Of a stretch of 64,000 nucleotides of DNA, positions 36,615 to 43,226 are shown piece after piece; position 1 is the first letter of the stretch; each line of letters begins with the position of its first letter. The notes below the pieces were generated by a model, which saw nothing but the letters and a program-made list of their open reading frames with translations, ran no database searches and was not told where the DNA came from. Origin of the DNA: Basidiobolus meristosporus CBS 931.73 (Eukaryota > Fungi > Basidiobolomycota); NCBI GenBank assembly GCA_002104905.1, contig MCFE01000352.1, positions 24,318-88,317 of the forward strand, given 5' to 3'. Made by a program: the position numbers and the translations under genes.

Positions 36615-37571
36615 ATGTCTGCTACTGCTAAGTTTGTTGCTGCTTCTGCTAACGAAGCTGCTGATAAGCCCACTGGCGCTAACTTGTACGCTCGTTTCGC
36701 CTTCGCTGGTGCTGTCTGCTGTGGTGTTACCCACGGTGCTCTTACTCCAGTTGATGTCGTCAAGACTAGAATCCAACTTGAGCCCACCGTCTACAACAAG
36801 GGTATGGTCAGTGGCTTCCGTCAAATTATTAAGAACGAAGGTGCTGGTGCTCTTTTGACCGGTTTCGGTCCTACCTTCTCTGGATACTTCCTCCAAGGTG
36901 CTTTGAAGTTCGGAGGTTATGAATTCTGGAAGAAGACCTTCATTGATGTCCTTGGTCTCGAGACTGCCTCCAACAACCGCACCGCCATCTACCTTGCCTC
37001 CTCTGCTATCGCCGAGTTCTTCGCCGATATCGCCCTCTGCCCCTTGGAAGCTACTCGTATTCGTCTCGTCTCCCAACCTTCCTTCGCCAGTGGCCTTATC
37101 TCTGGCTTCTCCAGATTGTTGAAGGAGGAGGGTGTTGCCCGTGGTTTCTACTCCGGCTTCGGACCCATTTGCTTCAAGCAAATCCCTTACACCATGGCTA
37201 AGTTCGTTGTTTACGAGCGTGCCGCTGAGGCCATCTACAAGAACCTTGCCACTCCTAAGGACCAATTGAGCTCTGGCTCCCACACCGCCGTCAACCTTAC
37301 CTCTGGTTTGATCGCCGGTATCTGCGCTGCCATCGTCTCCCAACCCGCCGATACCCTCCTCTCCAAGATCAACAAGCAAAAGGGTGCTGAAGGATCTGTC
37401 ACCAGCCGCTTGATCGGTCTCTCCAAGGAGCTCGGTGTTAAGGGACTCTTCATTGGTCTTGGTCCTCGTATTGTCATGGTCGGTGCCTTGACCTCCCTCC
37501 AATTCGCCATCTACGGTGATATCAAGAGAGCCCTCGGAGCCACCGGTGGTGTCGAAATCACCAAGAACTAA
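36615..37571 (+). CDS. MIR1: Mitochondrial phosphate carrier (SLC25A3 family)
   Basis: [68 protein letters not shown]; intronless with strong codon bias. Confidence 0.95.
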
Positions 37572-38025: not shown

Positions 38026-41000
38026 CTACTCGATTACTTTCCACTAATGTAGGGTACAACGGTTCGTCCATCATTTAGCAACAAGTCCACGATAACATGA
38101 CGTGATAGAACAAACCTGAATTACACAGCCGTCCATGCCGCCGGTAGAGAGCACGTACTCGCCATCGCAAGAGAATGCCACGTTGGTGACGAAGGACGAG
38201 TGTCCTTTGTAAGATTTGGCGGGCGCCTACAATGAGCATTGTCGTTAGGGAGGATTGAGGTTGTGCAGAAGAGCCCAGGGGTTCTTACGTTTTCTCTGTA
38301 TGCTGGGTAGCTGTATAGTTTGACTTGGGAACGGGTATTTCCGCTCACCAGAACATTTCCTCTGGGGCTCCTGGAAACGGCATAGATCTAAGGTGCGTGG
38401 GGTCCGAGTTACACACGATCGGATAGATTTAAATGAGCATCACTTACCTCCCGGCCAGTCATCCAGGATTCTTGGGTGCCTAGAGTTGGCCAGCCAATAG
38501 GGCATTCGTAGGTATTCCAGTCAACATCAGAGAGCTTGGAAGGGTGTTTTTGTTGTTCACACGATGGTATTTGCCCTGCGTATGGATGGTCCAAGATGAG
38601 TTCAGACATTTGTGGTTGAATCATTTGCCAAGGAGCGCTTACAAAACAACAGTTCAGAGTCGATGCTATTTGATTGTAGATGTTGTGAGTCATTTGACCA
38701 GTCCATTCGTGTCACCCTGCTCGAATGTCCCTATTGTGAAACGGCGGAGGTCTGAACAAACAGTCCACTTGAAAGCCCATGGGAAATACATACATGACAG
38801 GTCCCAATGTGTTTCCATCCTTTTGTTGCGTATATATCGATACCGGTGTCCGCTGAGAATGCCCCGATAGCGAGATATTCCCCATTTGGGGAGTATTTCA
38901 CAACATGTTGCCAACTATCTATGGTTTGGGCTTTCTTCGGCTCAATTTCGTGGATTTTGGTGAGCCCTTGTAGCTCCAAGATGATCAACTACGTGGATGG
39001 TTGTGTTATCCAAACATGCACGGACATTTATGCCGATGCATATGCGAATAGATCTACCTTGTCTGTTACTGCTGTGACAGCTATCTGTTGCTCCCTCGGA
39101 TGAATTGCCACTGAACGCAACGGAATGCCCAAATTTACCTTGTGAATCTGTTTCCAAGCGAATGGTTAGCACATTCAAATTGTTCGGTGCGTTATGCACT
39201 AACCAATTTCTTTTGGTGCATATCCCAGTGCGCTACCACTTGATCATCACCACAGGTAACAAATTCTGGCGCGTCCGGATGTGTAGCAAGCCCCCATACT
39301 TCGCTCATCTTAAAGCTGTCGTGAGCCTTGGGGATTTGGTTAGCGGTGTGGGTTCCGTCTGATCTATTTCAATCCACACGTACCATCACAAGTACTTTTG
39401 GTTTTGCTGGATCCTTCAAGTCCAAATGATATATTACCGAATCCTCAGTGCCCACCACCAGGGTGTTTTCGTCACATTTCTCCAAAGCACGAATGCTTTT
39501 CCCAACCCCATTCCAAACCATGCGCGGGGCACTTTTGGACGAGGGTTGATGCTCCATAATTTTACCGTCTTTACCTCCACTGTAGAAATGGCCTGCACTC
39601 TTGTCGAAATGCATAGCGAAGATCGGTCCCTGCGAAATCAAACGATCAATACGAAGTTGACAAGCAGAGAATATCTCTACGAGCCTACTTGATGAGCATT
39701 CTCAATAACTCCGCTGACTTGTCGCTTCGCAATGTCCCACATGTAGATTGAGCCGTCCATACAGCCAGTAGCTATTGTACCCTTATCAATATACGTGGCG
39801 CTCAATATGGTCTATTAAGGAGCCGTTGGTGCGTTAATGCAACAATTCACCCTACATATGTGAGAATGAGTATGGTTACCTGGATCTTTCCGAGCGGTCC
39901 AAATACACCTTTCTTGCTGTTCAGTGATTGTGGGCTTCCATCAAATCGCCAAAATTTGACATGCTTCACTCCGAAGGCCACAAACTCGGATTCGTCAAGT
40001 GGATTGAACACTATGTCAAGTACCTAGATATACAGCATAAGATGCTTGTCCACGCCGAAGCTCAGTTGTGTGATACGATGCTCACCAAATCCGAATGGCC
40101 GCTAGTGGAGATGACCGGCTCGCTGCTCGCTTTCCAATCGAACATCTCAATCTAAGCAAACGGATGAGCTAAGAAAGATCGATGCAGTAGTGGGATCCTT
40201 GTTTACCGTATGATCTTTGTCTTTGCAAACAGCGACCAGGTACTTGCCATTGGGTGAAAAGGTGACCGAGACAACTCCTTTAAACACGGTTCCTTGTCCA
40301 CATTTCAGAGTTGCAACCGGAGAGTCCTCCGGTTTTTTGGATTTCCAGATATGCACCTTTACTCCTCCCTCAGGGTCGTTGACCGATGCGACGTCCCCAG
40401 TAGCTACGTATTCGCCAGAAGGGTGTACGGCTATGCTAATGACATCGTCGTTGTGGCCTGTGAAAAATCGCTGGGTGTCGGATTTCAGGTCATGAACTAT
40501 TCCTAAAGATCCAGCGAAGTAGACAATGCGTGGTGATTCGCCAGTTGCGTTGGGTAGGGTGAATATGTTATTGCGACAATCGCGGGTACGATATCCGTAC
40601 ACACGGTCTATTTGAAGCGATTCATTAGGTGTGTTGTTGGCTGATGGGATGAATTGGCTAGGCGGATATATAGCACCAGCCCATGGTTGGCTCCCCTAAG
40701 TAAGGATGTTAAATTACTGCCTGGACGTGAAGAAAAAGAACCAACTACTGTAGTGTTGCTTCTAGCATCGGAACTAGCGTTGCCTAAATTGAGATCAACA
40801 GTGTAAGCTTAAGCCTGTATCGATGGTTCTAAACAACCTACTATTTTCTTGTACTACTCGAAGGCCAAAGCGTAGTTGTCCCTACAAAAACCATTGTGTC
40901 AATAAAACGATGGGCCATATGCATCCCCAAACCCCATTCTCCTGGGTACCTGACTCTCAGCTATTGGTAAAGTTTTTTCGACTAGAGAGTTCAGAGAAAG

Positions 41001-41437
41001 CTCCGAGAAATCGTATTCAACCTCCCCCAAAGGGTCGTCGTTGGAGAGGAAATCACGGTCGAACAGAGTGAATTTTATCTGTTTTAACAAAGGTGAGTCT
41101 TTCGGAAATCCACAGACGCGAGTACAGTGTAATTACCTTGGAATCTCCCTCGGCCACATATAACTTGAAAACTAGAGTTCCACACGGGATTCAGATTTTC
41201 GTGGACGGTCTTGGATTGCGCACGCTGACTACCTTTACCGGTCCCTACAGTCATCACCACGTAGGGGTCAGAAGAATCTAGTTTTGGGAGGAGCAGATTT
41301 GAACAGCTATTACTATAAGGGGCGTTTGCCAGGATAACTGCACGGTACTTACTGGTCTCCTTATCCATCGCAGTTAGGCCTTTCGCTTCGTGCAACTGCA
41401 CCTCAATGTAGGTTACTTTTTCGCTTTGGACAACCAT
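38026..41437 (-). CDS. C2 domain + EML (HELP + WD40 TAPE domain) fusion protein (multi-exon; apparent +1 homopolymer frameshift at 41168-41171)
   Basis: C2: IEVQLHEAKGLTAMD..SDPYVVMTVG...SKTVHENLNPVWN, IKFTLFDRDFLSNDDPLGEV. HELP: RVYGYRTRDCRNN..IVYFAGSLGIVHD...QRFFTGHNDDVISIAVHP. EML C-terminus: YKGHSSFVTNVAF...LSTGGMDGCVIQWKVIE*. Confidence 0.88.
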
Positions 41438-42128: not shown

Positions 42129-43226
42129 CTAGCAAGAGGCCAGCACTTGTGCAACAGACACTTTGCTTAGGTAGCCCTCATCCTCCTGGTCGTCCTTAGT
42201 AATGATCGGACTGCTGTCCGTGGGGAAGAAGCTCTCGTCGTTGGAGCTGGGGTGCTTTGACATCTCAAAGGAATCATGCCACCCCTCCTTATCGTCGGTG
42301 ATTTCAGGGTTCCCCATCCACTGCCGATATAGCTTGTATAGAATCGGATCCATCAAAAAGGCAACAAAGTTGAATACGCCGGGTGATGAGGAGGTCACCA
42401 CCCTAATCAGGTCAATGGCGTAATTATGCTTGGCCGGCGTAAACGAATAGAGCGTCTTTACGATGGTGAAAGTGTAGGTTAGAATCGGAACCAGCGGATA
42501 ACCAATAATCCGCTGCACTGCTCGGTGAACCTTTCTGGACGTTTCATGTGCCCTGCGCTCCATCGTGTCTTTGGTGTGCTTTGGAAGGTTGTCGTTGAGC
42601 TCGTGCGTCAGTGATCTCTTGAGCCGGCTACTTTCCCGGAAGAGTTTCCGGGCAACAATAATCACGACAGCTAAGCAAAAGATGATACCAACAATCATCC
42701 AAAAGAACATCGTCGCATATTCCCACAACAGCTCCTGAACCGAACCTCGGTCGTAGAACCAGCAGGCATCTGTCGGAACGTCGTAACCGTATTTGTTGAG
42801 AATCAGCGGGATCGCAGCACAGGCGACGGATAAAATTAATGAGGCAGAGATATAATATTTTTGTAGGTTTCGAGTGATGCGATTGAAGACAAATACTAGT
42901 AGCAAATTCAAGGCGATGCATGTTGCAAATGCCACCAGCATGATCGAGGCGAATATGTAAACGAACATGGTAAGCTTACAACCCAAGTCCAAGTGCTGGT
43001 TTTTTGGTAGATTGGCGCTGATCAACACAGCTATGACCAGAAATAAATCCGCGTAGCACATACCTAGCTGTAGCTTGAAAGAGATTCTGTTTGTGTCTTT
43101 GGGGTATTTTCGACTCAAATACATAACAACCAGAATCACTGTCAGTGAGCAGATGGCCGATAAAGGGCAGAATATTTTGATCAAAGTAGCCAACACTTCA
43201 TGCTGTGAGGGGGTTAATTCTGGCAT
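42129..43226 (-). CDS. 7-TM GPCR, cAMP-receptor-like/Git3-like class (intronless)
   Basis: Seven hydrophobic segments; RISFKLQ...ADL, GCKL in ECL1/TM3, CIALNL, YGYD...ACWF in ECL2, RIIGYPLVPIL, GVFNFVAFLMDP. Confidence 0.82.
   Translation of the reverse strand: MPELTPSQHEVLATLIKIFCPLSAICSLTVILVVMYLSRKYPKDTNRISFKLQLGMCYADLFLVIAVLISANLPKNQHLDLGCKLTMFVYIFASIMLVAFATCIALNLLLVFVFNRITRNLQKYYISASLILSVACAAIPLILNKYGYDVPTDACWFYDRGSVQELLWEYATMFFWMIVGIIFCLAVVIIVARKLFRESSRLKRSLTHELNDNLPKHTKDTMERRAHETSRKVHRAVQRIIGYPLVPILTYTFTIVKTLYSFTPAKHNYAIDLIRVVTSSSPGVFNFVAFLMDPILYKLYRQWMGNPEITDDKEGWHDSFEMSKHPSSNDESFFPTDSSPIITKDDQEDEGYLSKVSVAQVLASC

Follow-up and report, generated by a model that had tools for sequence, protein, structure and literature searches.

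Does a single fungal gene join a C2 domain to the tubulin-binding module of the EML proteins, and what might such a protein do? Research on EMLs has been carried out almost only in animals, around neuronal migration, mitosis and EML4-ALK, and the cytoskeletal regulators of early-diverging fungi are poorly known. The question is raised by a locus of Basidiobolus meristosporus CBS 931.73, in a stretch of 64,000 nucleotides (contig MCFE01000352.1, positions 24,318 to 88,317 of the forward strand) that we call the window and whose numbering is used below. A preliminary description of this DNA had placed at 38026-41437 a C2 domain with Ca2+-type aspartates, fused to a HELP motif and WD40 repeats, in an early-diverging fungus. 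The host is indeed such a fungus, Basidiobolus, and the position was right: the gene lies on the minus strand, runs from an ATG at 41437 to a TAG at 38026, and comprises 18 exons and about 782 codons.

Between 41600 and 37950, open segments of the three frames of the minus strand were chained into exons via canonical GT..AG sites. The introns thus defined measure 53-75 nt and are all GT..AG, and the gene matches GenBank MCFE01000352.1 base for base (region 59343-68754), where its public protein model is P0152. Exon 6, in an exhaustive profile search, retrieved the 783-residue protein P0001, 83% identical over that exon, and further relatives were collected by a word search seeded with P0001. 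Two paralogues are present in Basidiobolus ranarum (P0001 and P0151) and two in CBS 931.73 (the window gene, P0152, and P0153).

The first four exons encode the C2 domain. Exon 1 (41353..41437) carries C2 strand 1 and the first Ca2+ ligand (AMD), and its GTAAGT donor opens a 75-nt in-frame intron. Exon 2 (41137..41277) provides loop 1 (SDPY) and strands 2-4, contains a frameshift and ends at a conserved AAG/GTAATT donor, while exon 3 (40950..41078) provides strands 5-7 and the loop 3 ligands (FDRDFLSNDD). The last C2 strand (GQLRFGLRVVQEN) is encoded by exon 4 (40842..40881), a conserved exon of its own in P0001, P0153 and P0151, and exon 5 (40749..40783) encodes an uncharged linker rich in Ser and Asn. 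HELP and the first EML beta-propeller follow in exons 6-10 (39384..40695), namely exon 6 at 40695-40207, exon 7 at 40151-40086, exon 8 at 40023-39880, exon 9 at 39811-39689 and exon 10 at 39629-39384. The second propeller, ending in QWKVIE and the stop codon, occupies exons 11-18 (38026..39326): exon 11 (39326-39204), exon 12 (39147-39058), exon 13 (38988-38794), exon 14 (38730-38643), exon 15 (38575-38448), exon 16 (38387-38289), exon 17 (38226-38116) and exon 18 (38043-38026). All of these features are on the minus strand, and the motifs quoted in the preliminary description (AMD, SDPY, FDRD..NDD and GHSSFVTNVAF..STGGMDG..QW) are all present in the exons.

The C2 and EML parts are a single gene. 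Against two adjoining genes wrongly merged into one stands the gap between the last C2 exon and the HELP exon, which measures just 147 nt and is taken up by a phase-compatible exon of 35 nt with its two introns. Upstream of exon 7 the EML part offers no in-frame ATG, and the six-exon 5' structure is identical in three annotated relatives. The same fusion is found in at least eight named species, including the amoebozoan Rhizamoeba saxonica, whose member of the family (P0131) is a single assembled Trinity transcript. The two-gene reading is effectively refuted and we leave it next to no probability; the single C2-HELP gene of the preliminary description stands on the short gap, the late EML start codon and the 5' structure shared by the relatives.

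Pfam searches on the exon pieces gave C2, HELP, Beta-prop_EML and Beta-prop_EML_2 in colinear order. The HELP motif (PF03451) occupies residues 23-66 of exon 6 (40498..40629, minus strand), with 49 bits against a cut-off of 27 (4.1e-13), and the EML propellers (PF23409 and PF23414) are hit in the expected order by colinear partial matches from every exon piece. In the orthologue P0001, the intact propellers reach 218 bits (cut-off 88) and 361 bits (cut-off 90). Taken by itself, exon 6 hits the sequence of the EML1 TAPE crystal structure 4ci8 at 4.4e-20. Because the Pfam domains are colinear and exon 6 matches 4ci8, the C2-EML observation is real and far beyond chance, and we are highly confident of the identity and architecture of this gene.

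Full-length AlphaFold2 prediction was performed on P0001, which is 75.6% identical to the window protein and stood in for it, using a 31-sequence family alignment. With a mean pLDDT of 88.7, the model has a sandwich (residues 8-130) that a short helix and linker of low confidence (131-150) connect to the propellers. In Foldseek, it retrieved the EML1 TAPE (4ci8) first (E 6.7e-59, TM 0.88 by target, 2.8 Å, 33% identity), and the next-best matches were axonemal microtubule-bound WD proteins. The HELP and WD40 module recognized in the preliminary description is therefore an EML module, by its Pfam HELP motif, by both EML propellers and by the predicted fold of P0001, and the structure prediction that it had asked for yields, in this orthologue, an eight-stranded C2 domain followed by a TAPE.

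One could nevertheless regard this TAPE as a generic WD40 scaffold for partners other than tubulin, targeted to membranes by Ca2+ in a process such as vesicle traffic or membrane repair and unrelated to microtubules. The identity to the EML1 TAPE is low at one third of positions, a tubulin role for the TAPE beyond animals would be an extrapolation, and the TAPE of Drosophila DCX-EMAP gave no microtubule signal and is thought to serve localisation rather than microtubule binding (PMC10471123). Against such a scaffold stand the P0001 scores of HELP and both propellers, far above their cut-offs, the close match of its predicted fold to 4ci8, and the microtubule-bound proteins that come next in the fold search. 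We consider it very unlikely, and keep to a module that would engage tubulin.

How it would do so depends on what precedes it. The coiled-coil and the basic Ser/Thr-rich linker of animal EMLs are required, and are enough, for microtubule-lattice binding, and the intact EML TAPE, in which HELP is buried between the propellers, associates with soluble tubulin (PMC4761370). With animal EML1-4 and sea-urchin EMAP, the Basidiobolus protein shares HELP and the two atypical beta-propellers, but it has neither a trimerising coiled-coil nor a basic Ser/Thr-rich linker, as the preliminary description had implied. In P0001 the C2 domain begins at residue 8, and the sole helix (residues 132-146) has a low pLDDT. 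The linker between C2 and HELP in Basidiobolus is 17 residues long, rich in Ser and Asn, with one K/R in 17, while that of the Neocallimastigomycota is Lys-rich (6 K/R of 22-27 residues). Animal-type binding to the lattice is not expected in Basidiobolus, since both the coiled-coil and the basic linker are missing.

The C2 domain spans approximately residues 8-130. On the exon pieces, its N-terminal half is recognized by Pfam at 2.2e-11 (44.3 bits) and its C-terminal half at 3.4e-4 (21.2 bits); the domain scores 76-99 bits in intact relatives. In the P0001 model it has eight strands (8-19, 33-39, 46-49, 60-68, 75-82, 90-98, 107-113 and 120-130), the last of which, predicted with high confidence, is the product of exon 4. 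A single-sequence AlphaFold2 model of the C2 domain alone was mediocre (pLDDT 69.8) and served only for fold matches, not topology; those matches were exclusively C2 domains. By sequence, the closest solved C2 is a dysferlin C2, followed by those of synaptotagmin-7 and -1, plant CAR proteins and PKC alpha/beta.

Aligned to the C2 domains of Syt7, Syt1, PKC and dysferlin, the domain has Asp at all five canonical Ca2+ ligand positions: in loop 1, a D and the D of SDPY, and in loop 3, D-x-D and a D at +8, with an extra Asp at +7. In our own reading of the motif, a hydrophobic M in loop 1 and F and L in loop 3 would sit at the positions by which synaptotagmins insert into membranes. The Ca2+-dependent C2 domains of synaptotagmins, classical PKCs and ferlins have in common with the Basidiobolus domain the Pfam C2 family, the eight-stranded sandwich and the five Asp of loops 1 and 3. 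They differ from it in context, as here there is a single N-terminal C2 without a transmembrane segment, a kinase or a tandem C2, and in loop 1, whose spacing is one residue longer in Basidiobolus (D-x6-D). The five Asp are kept in the window, in all Basidiobolus members and in those of Syncephalis, Piptocephalis and Rhizamoeba. In the Neocallimastigomycota, the ligand set reads N/D, D, D, E, L, short of five acidic residues, and loop 1 is expanded. Ca2+ dependence therefore cannot be family-wide.

These features also bear on a different division of labour, in which the C2 domain would itself be a tubulin- or microtubule-binding or regulatory module that takes the place of the coiled-coil and basic region, with Ca2+ tuning the affinity and no membrane step involved. 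For dysferlin, which has the nearest solved C2, binding of C2 domains to tubulin and microtubules has been reported (PMC2853571), and the replaced N-terminus of DCX-EMAP is a microtubule binder (PMC10471123). The Neocallimastigomycota, with their degenerate Ca2+ site, have a Lys-rich linker reminiscent of a basic microtubule-binding stretch. The linkers of Basidiobolus are not basic, however, and the five Asp together with the hydrophobic loop residues are fully conserved in four lineages, which is the signature of a Ca2+/phospholipid C2. We judge direct tubulin binding by the C2 domain distinctly unlikely and continue with a C2 that would act on membranes.

The canonical C2 claimed in the preliminary description stands in that the five Asp align with Ca2+ ligands, but it silently crossed a broken reading frame in exon 2. 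One surplus base lies at 41171-41167 on the minus strand (AGT TTT C AAG) and shifts the frame from 0 to +1, so that the C2 reading frame in the CBS 931.73 assembly is interrupted. When four Basidiobolus genes are aligned as DNA, the relatives have AAG/AAA/AGA immediately after TTT/TTC, one base fewer, and the intron positions on both sides of exon 2 are conserved. The orthologous proteins read NPVWNS(N/S/T)F(K/R)LFL(T/S)EGD(S/T)K and then (I/V)KFTL; in the window, NPVWNSSF is read in frame 0 and KLYVAEGDSK in frame +1, up to the strong AAG/GTAATT donor. Read literally, an mRNA spliced at this donor would run into a stop a few codons into exon 3. A 117-aa genomic ORF queried against the protein collection returned no independent ORF call spanning the break. 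Gene models that sidestepped the frameshift via the weak donors GTTATA (774 aa) and GTACTC (787 aa) were dropped, because the orthologue and DNA alignments gave the conserved AAG/GT donor and the surplus base. Solely for comparisons, the gene was read through the break with an X, at 782 residues.

The public model P0152, annotated 'WD40 repeat-like protein' and carrying precomputed Pfam C2 and HELP assignments, has the same residue as our 18-exon model wherever both have one. It crosses the break by a 22-nt deletion (seven codons and one base), which makes an impossible 'intron', and it skips exons 4 and 5 altogether. The public gene model thus has two defects, and the reference assembly probably holds one wrong base.

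Both halves of the protein are kept by strong purifying selection. Against P0001, pN and pS are 0.137 and 0.789 for the C2 codons and 0.125 and 0.739 for the TAPE codons, with a dN/dS of ~0.04-0.07 for these codons where dS could be estimated. Comparisons with P0153 and P0151 gave similar values.

Either the assembly is wrong at the surplus base, or the window paralogue has been freshly inactivated and the intact P0153 carries the function. If the base were real, the window copy would be a recent pseudogene with a stop soon after exon 2. The base does stand in the deposited reference, the annotators likewise needed to bridge the break, and an intact paralogue is at hand in the same genome. In addition, a Glycos_transf_3 gene adjoins the three other Basidiobolus copies but not the window copy, which may therefore be a relocated duplicate. 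Yet the 18 exons are otherwise free of stops, frameshifts and splice-site defects, the C2 codons after the break are as conserved as those before it (pN against P0001 of 0.118 and 0.156, respectively), and assembly errors typically take this form, one base inserted at a short homopolymer. Because the rest of the gene is free of defects and the C2 domain is conserved after the break as before, we favour an assembly error and regard a pseudogene as unlikely, though by no means negligible. The pseudogene reading bears on the state of the window copy and fits with whatever function is assigned to the family.

The window protein belongs to a conserved C2-EML subfamily found in Zoopagomycota (Basidiobolus, Syncephalis, Piptocephalis), in Neocallimastigomycota and in one amoebozoan. 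Beyond Basidiobolus, its named fungal members are P0154 of Syncephalis fuscata, P0159 of Piptocephalis tieghemiana and, in Neocallimastigomycota, P0164 of Piromyces finnis, P0165 of Anaeromyces robustus and P0044 of Neocallimastix lanati. Pfam searches of whole proteins or N-termini confirmed the C2 domain in all named fungal relatives and in rumen-type metagenome proteins, and about 20 proteins with C2 and TAPE were counted when all retrieved proteins were surveyed locally with HMMs. Rhizamoeba supplied the one amoebozoan member, and a search with it returned no further non-fungal C2-EML. No C2 was detectable in the chytrid EMLs of Quaeritorhiza, Blyttiomyces and Obelidium, in P0098 or in the Chytriomyces proteins.

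Among 77 TAPE domains placed in a maximum-likelihood tree, a fungal EML clade has 100% SH-aLRT support; it takes in all 12 fungal members with C2, together with 4 from chytrids that lack it. The Rhizamoeba TAPE falls outside this clade on a long branch, and joining it to the fungal clade is not rejected by an AU test (p 0.49). The C2-EML architecture may thus have arisen once, anciently, and been lost later, or may have two independent origins. No homologue from Mucoromycota or Dikarya was among the best matches to P0001, consistent with loss there and with the earlier remark that EMLs are not typical of Dikarya.

The architecture is thus not private to the CBS 931.73 genome: C2-EML proteins are present in NCBI, UniRef and EukProt for at least eight named species and, because these species carry it, it is widespread within early-diverging fungi. 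The word 'undescribed' used for it in the preliminary description holds for the literature, where we found no paper on a C2-EML or C2-EMAP, nor on an EML in Basidiobolus, chytrids or Zoopagomycota, but not for the databases, in which the proteins were already public. The family is conserved and appears to be unstudied, its sequences being available under automatic names.

Several known proteins help to place it. Drosophila DCX-EMAP, like C2-EML, has kept the TAPE and swapped the N-terminal coiled-coil for another folded module; for this replacement it was called 'unique' among EMAPs in a 2023 article in J Cell Biol (PMC10471123), a status contradicted by the C2-EML family, whose N-terminus is also replaced. 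The two replacements differ, as that of DCX-EMAP is a doublecortin tandem that binds microtubules and that of C2-EML is a C2 of the Ca2+/lipid type. Short EML2 isoforms (EML2-S) resemble C2-EML in having no coiled-coil, being presumably monomeric and having a TAPE that acts without trimerisation; unlike C2-EML they have no added targeting domain, and an R-patch of their TAPE has been reported for microtubule binding. Three metagenomic proteins (P0075, P0102 and P0099) have EF-hands, another Ca2+-sensor module, N-terminal to the TAPE, but the sensor fold is not a C2 and their TAPE clades are unrelated to the fungal one.

What would a C2-EML do? A role as a Ca2+-triggered adaptor between membrane and tubulin, as the preliminary description proposed, is plausible; the part in tip growth, septation or spindle-pole anchoring that it also suggested would be speculative. 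The protein would be a monomer whose predicted TAPE engages tubulin dimers and possibly microtubule ends, a property extrapolated from human EML1. Upon a local rise in Ca2+, the C2 domain, with its five Asp and hydrophobic M, F and L, would dock on membranes of acidic phospholipids, and the TAPE, on its flexible linker, would be free to swing out from the membrane. From C2 docking and TAPE engagement together, we infer that Ca2+ signals might be coupled to a local pool of tubulin near the membrane or to the anchoring of microtubules, which in effect would make the protein a tubulin or microtubule-end binder recruited to membranes under Ca2+ control. Taken as a whole, from identity and architecture through to this Ca2+-gated mechanism, the proposal is a tentative one to which we give slightly less than an even chance.

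A broader hypothesis would see in C2-TAPE an ancient module of fungi or of Amorphea at large, by which a tubulin-binding propeller answers Ca2+ at the membrane. It would represent an ancestral Ca2+-microtubule coupling of early fungi that was lost together with the EMLs in Mucoromycota and Dikarya, the EF-hand-EML fusions of protists being an independent parallel. We find this history doubtful and give it a low probability.

Different targeting heads have been put on the TAPE module, as the conserved fungal C2-EML subfamily shows, and in this subfamily the action of the TAPE on its own can be studied in a natural, presumably monomeric system. The subfamily is also a concrete candidate for linking Ca2+ signalling to membranes and microtubules in early-diverging fungi.

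The public GenBank/JGI model of the C2-EML gene (P0152, L002:3001-6412) carries two defects relative to the reading at window positions 38026-41437: the frameshift in C2 exon 2 is bridged by a non-canonical 22-nt "intron", and exons 4 and 5 (40881-40842 and 40783-40749) are left out. Without these two exons, the model has neither the final strand of the C2 domain nor the linker that follows it. It is 750 aa long, against about 782 for the full gene reading.

On one side of the window copy is a gene for an apparent multi-pass membrane protein, and on the other a gene for a mitochondrial carrier. The former, upstream, is an intronless ORF of 365 aa (42129-43226, minus strand) with apparently several hydrophobic segments and no Pfam family on record. 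The latter, downstream, is also intronless (318 aa, Mito_carr; 36615-37571, plus strand) and is convergent with the C2-EML gene, with about 450 nt from stop to stop. In all three other Basidiobolus copies, the gene just upstream of C2-EML is a Glycos_transf_3 gene, anthranilate phosphoribosyltransferase-like (L001:1442-2528, L003:556-1642 and L004:311-1516). This difference in neighbours suggests that the window copy results from segmental duplication plus relocation.

Other EML proteins differ at the N-terminus. The chytrid EMLs P0160, P0098, P0170, P0179 and P0276 sit inside or near the fungal clade of the TAPE tree, and their N-termini of 260-400 residues have no Pfam domain, C2 being absent; that of P0160 appears low-complexity in the alignment. 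These N-termini could reflect C2 loss, replacement or incomplete gene models. Among a further set (P0075, P0102 and P0099, from metagenomic eukaryotes, and P0281) there are proteins with EF-hand motifs N-terminal to the TAPE domain (E-values of 2e-6 to 1e-4, mostly under Pfam cut-offs), and one protein bears SH3 domains. The swapping of N-terminal heads therefore seems to be recurrent in the EML family, and to include a second type of Ca2+ sensor.
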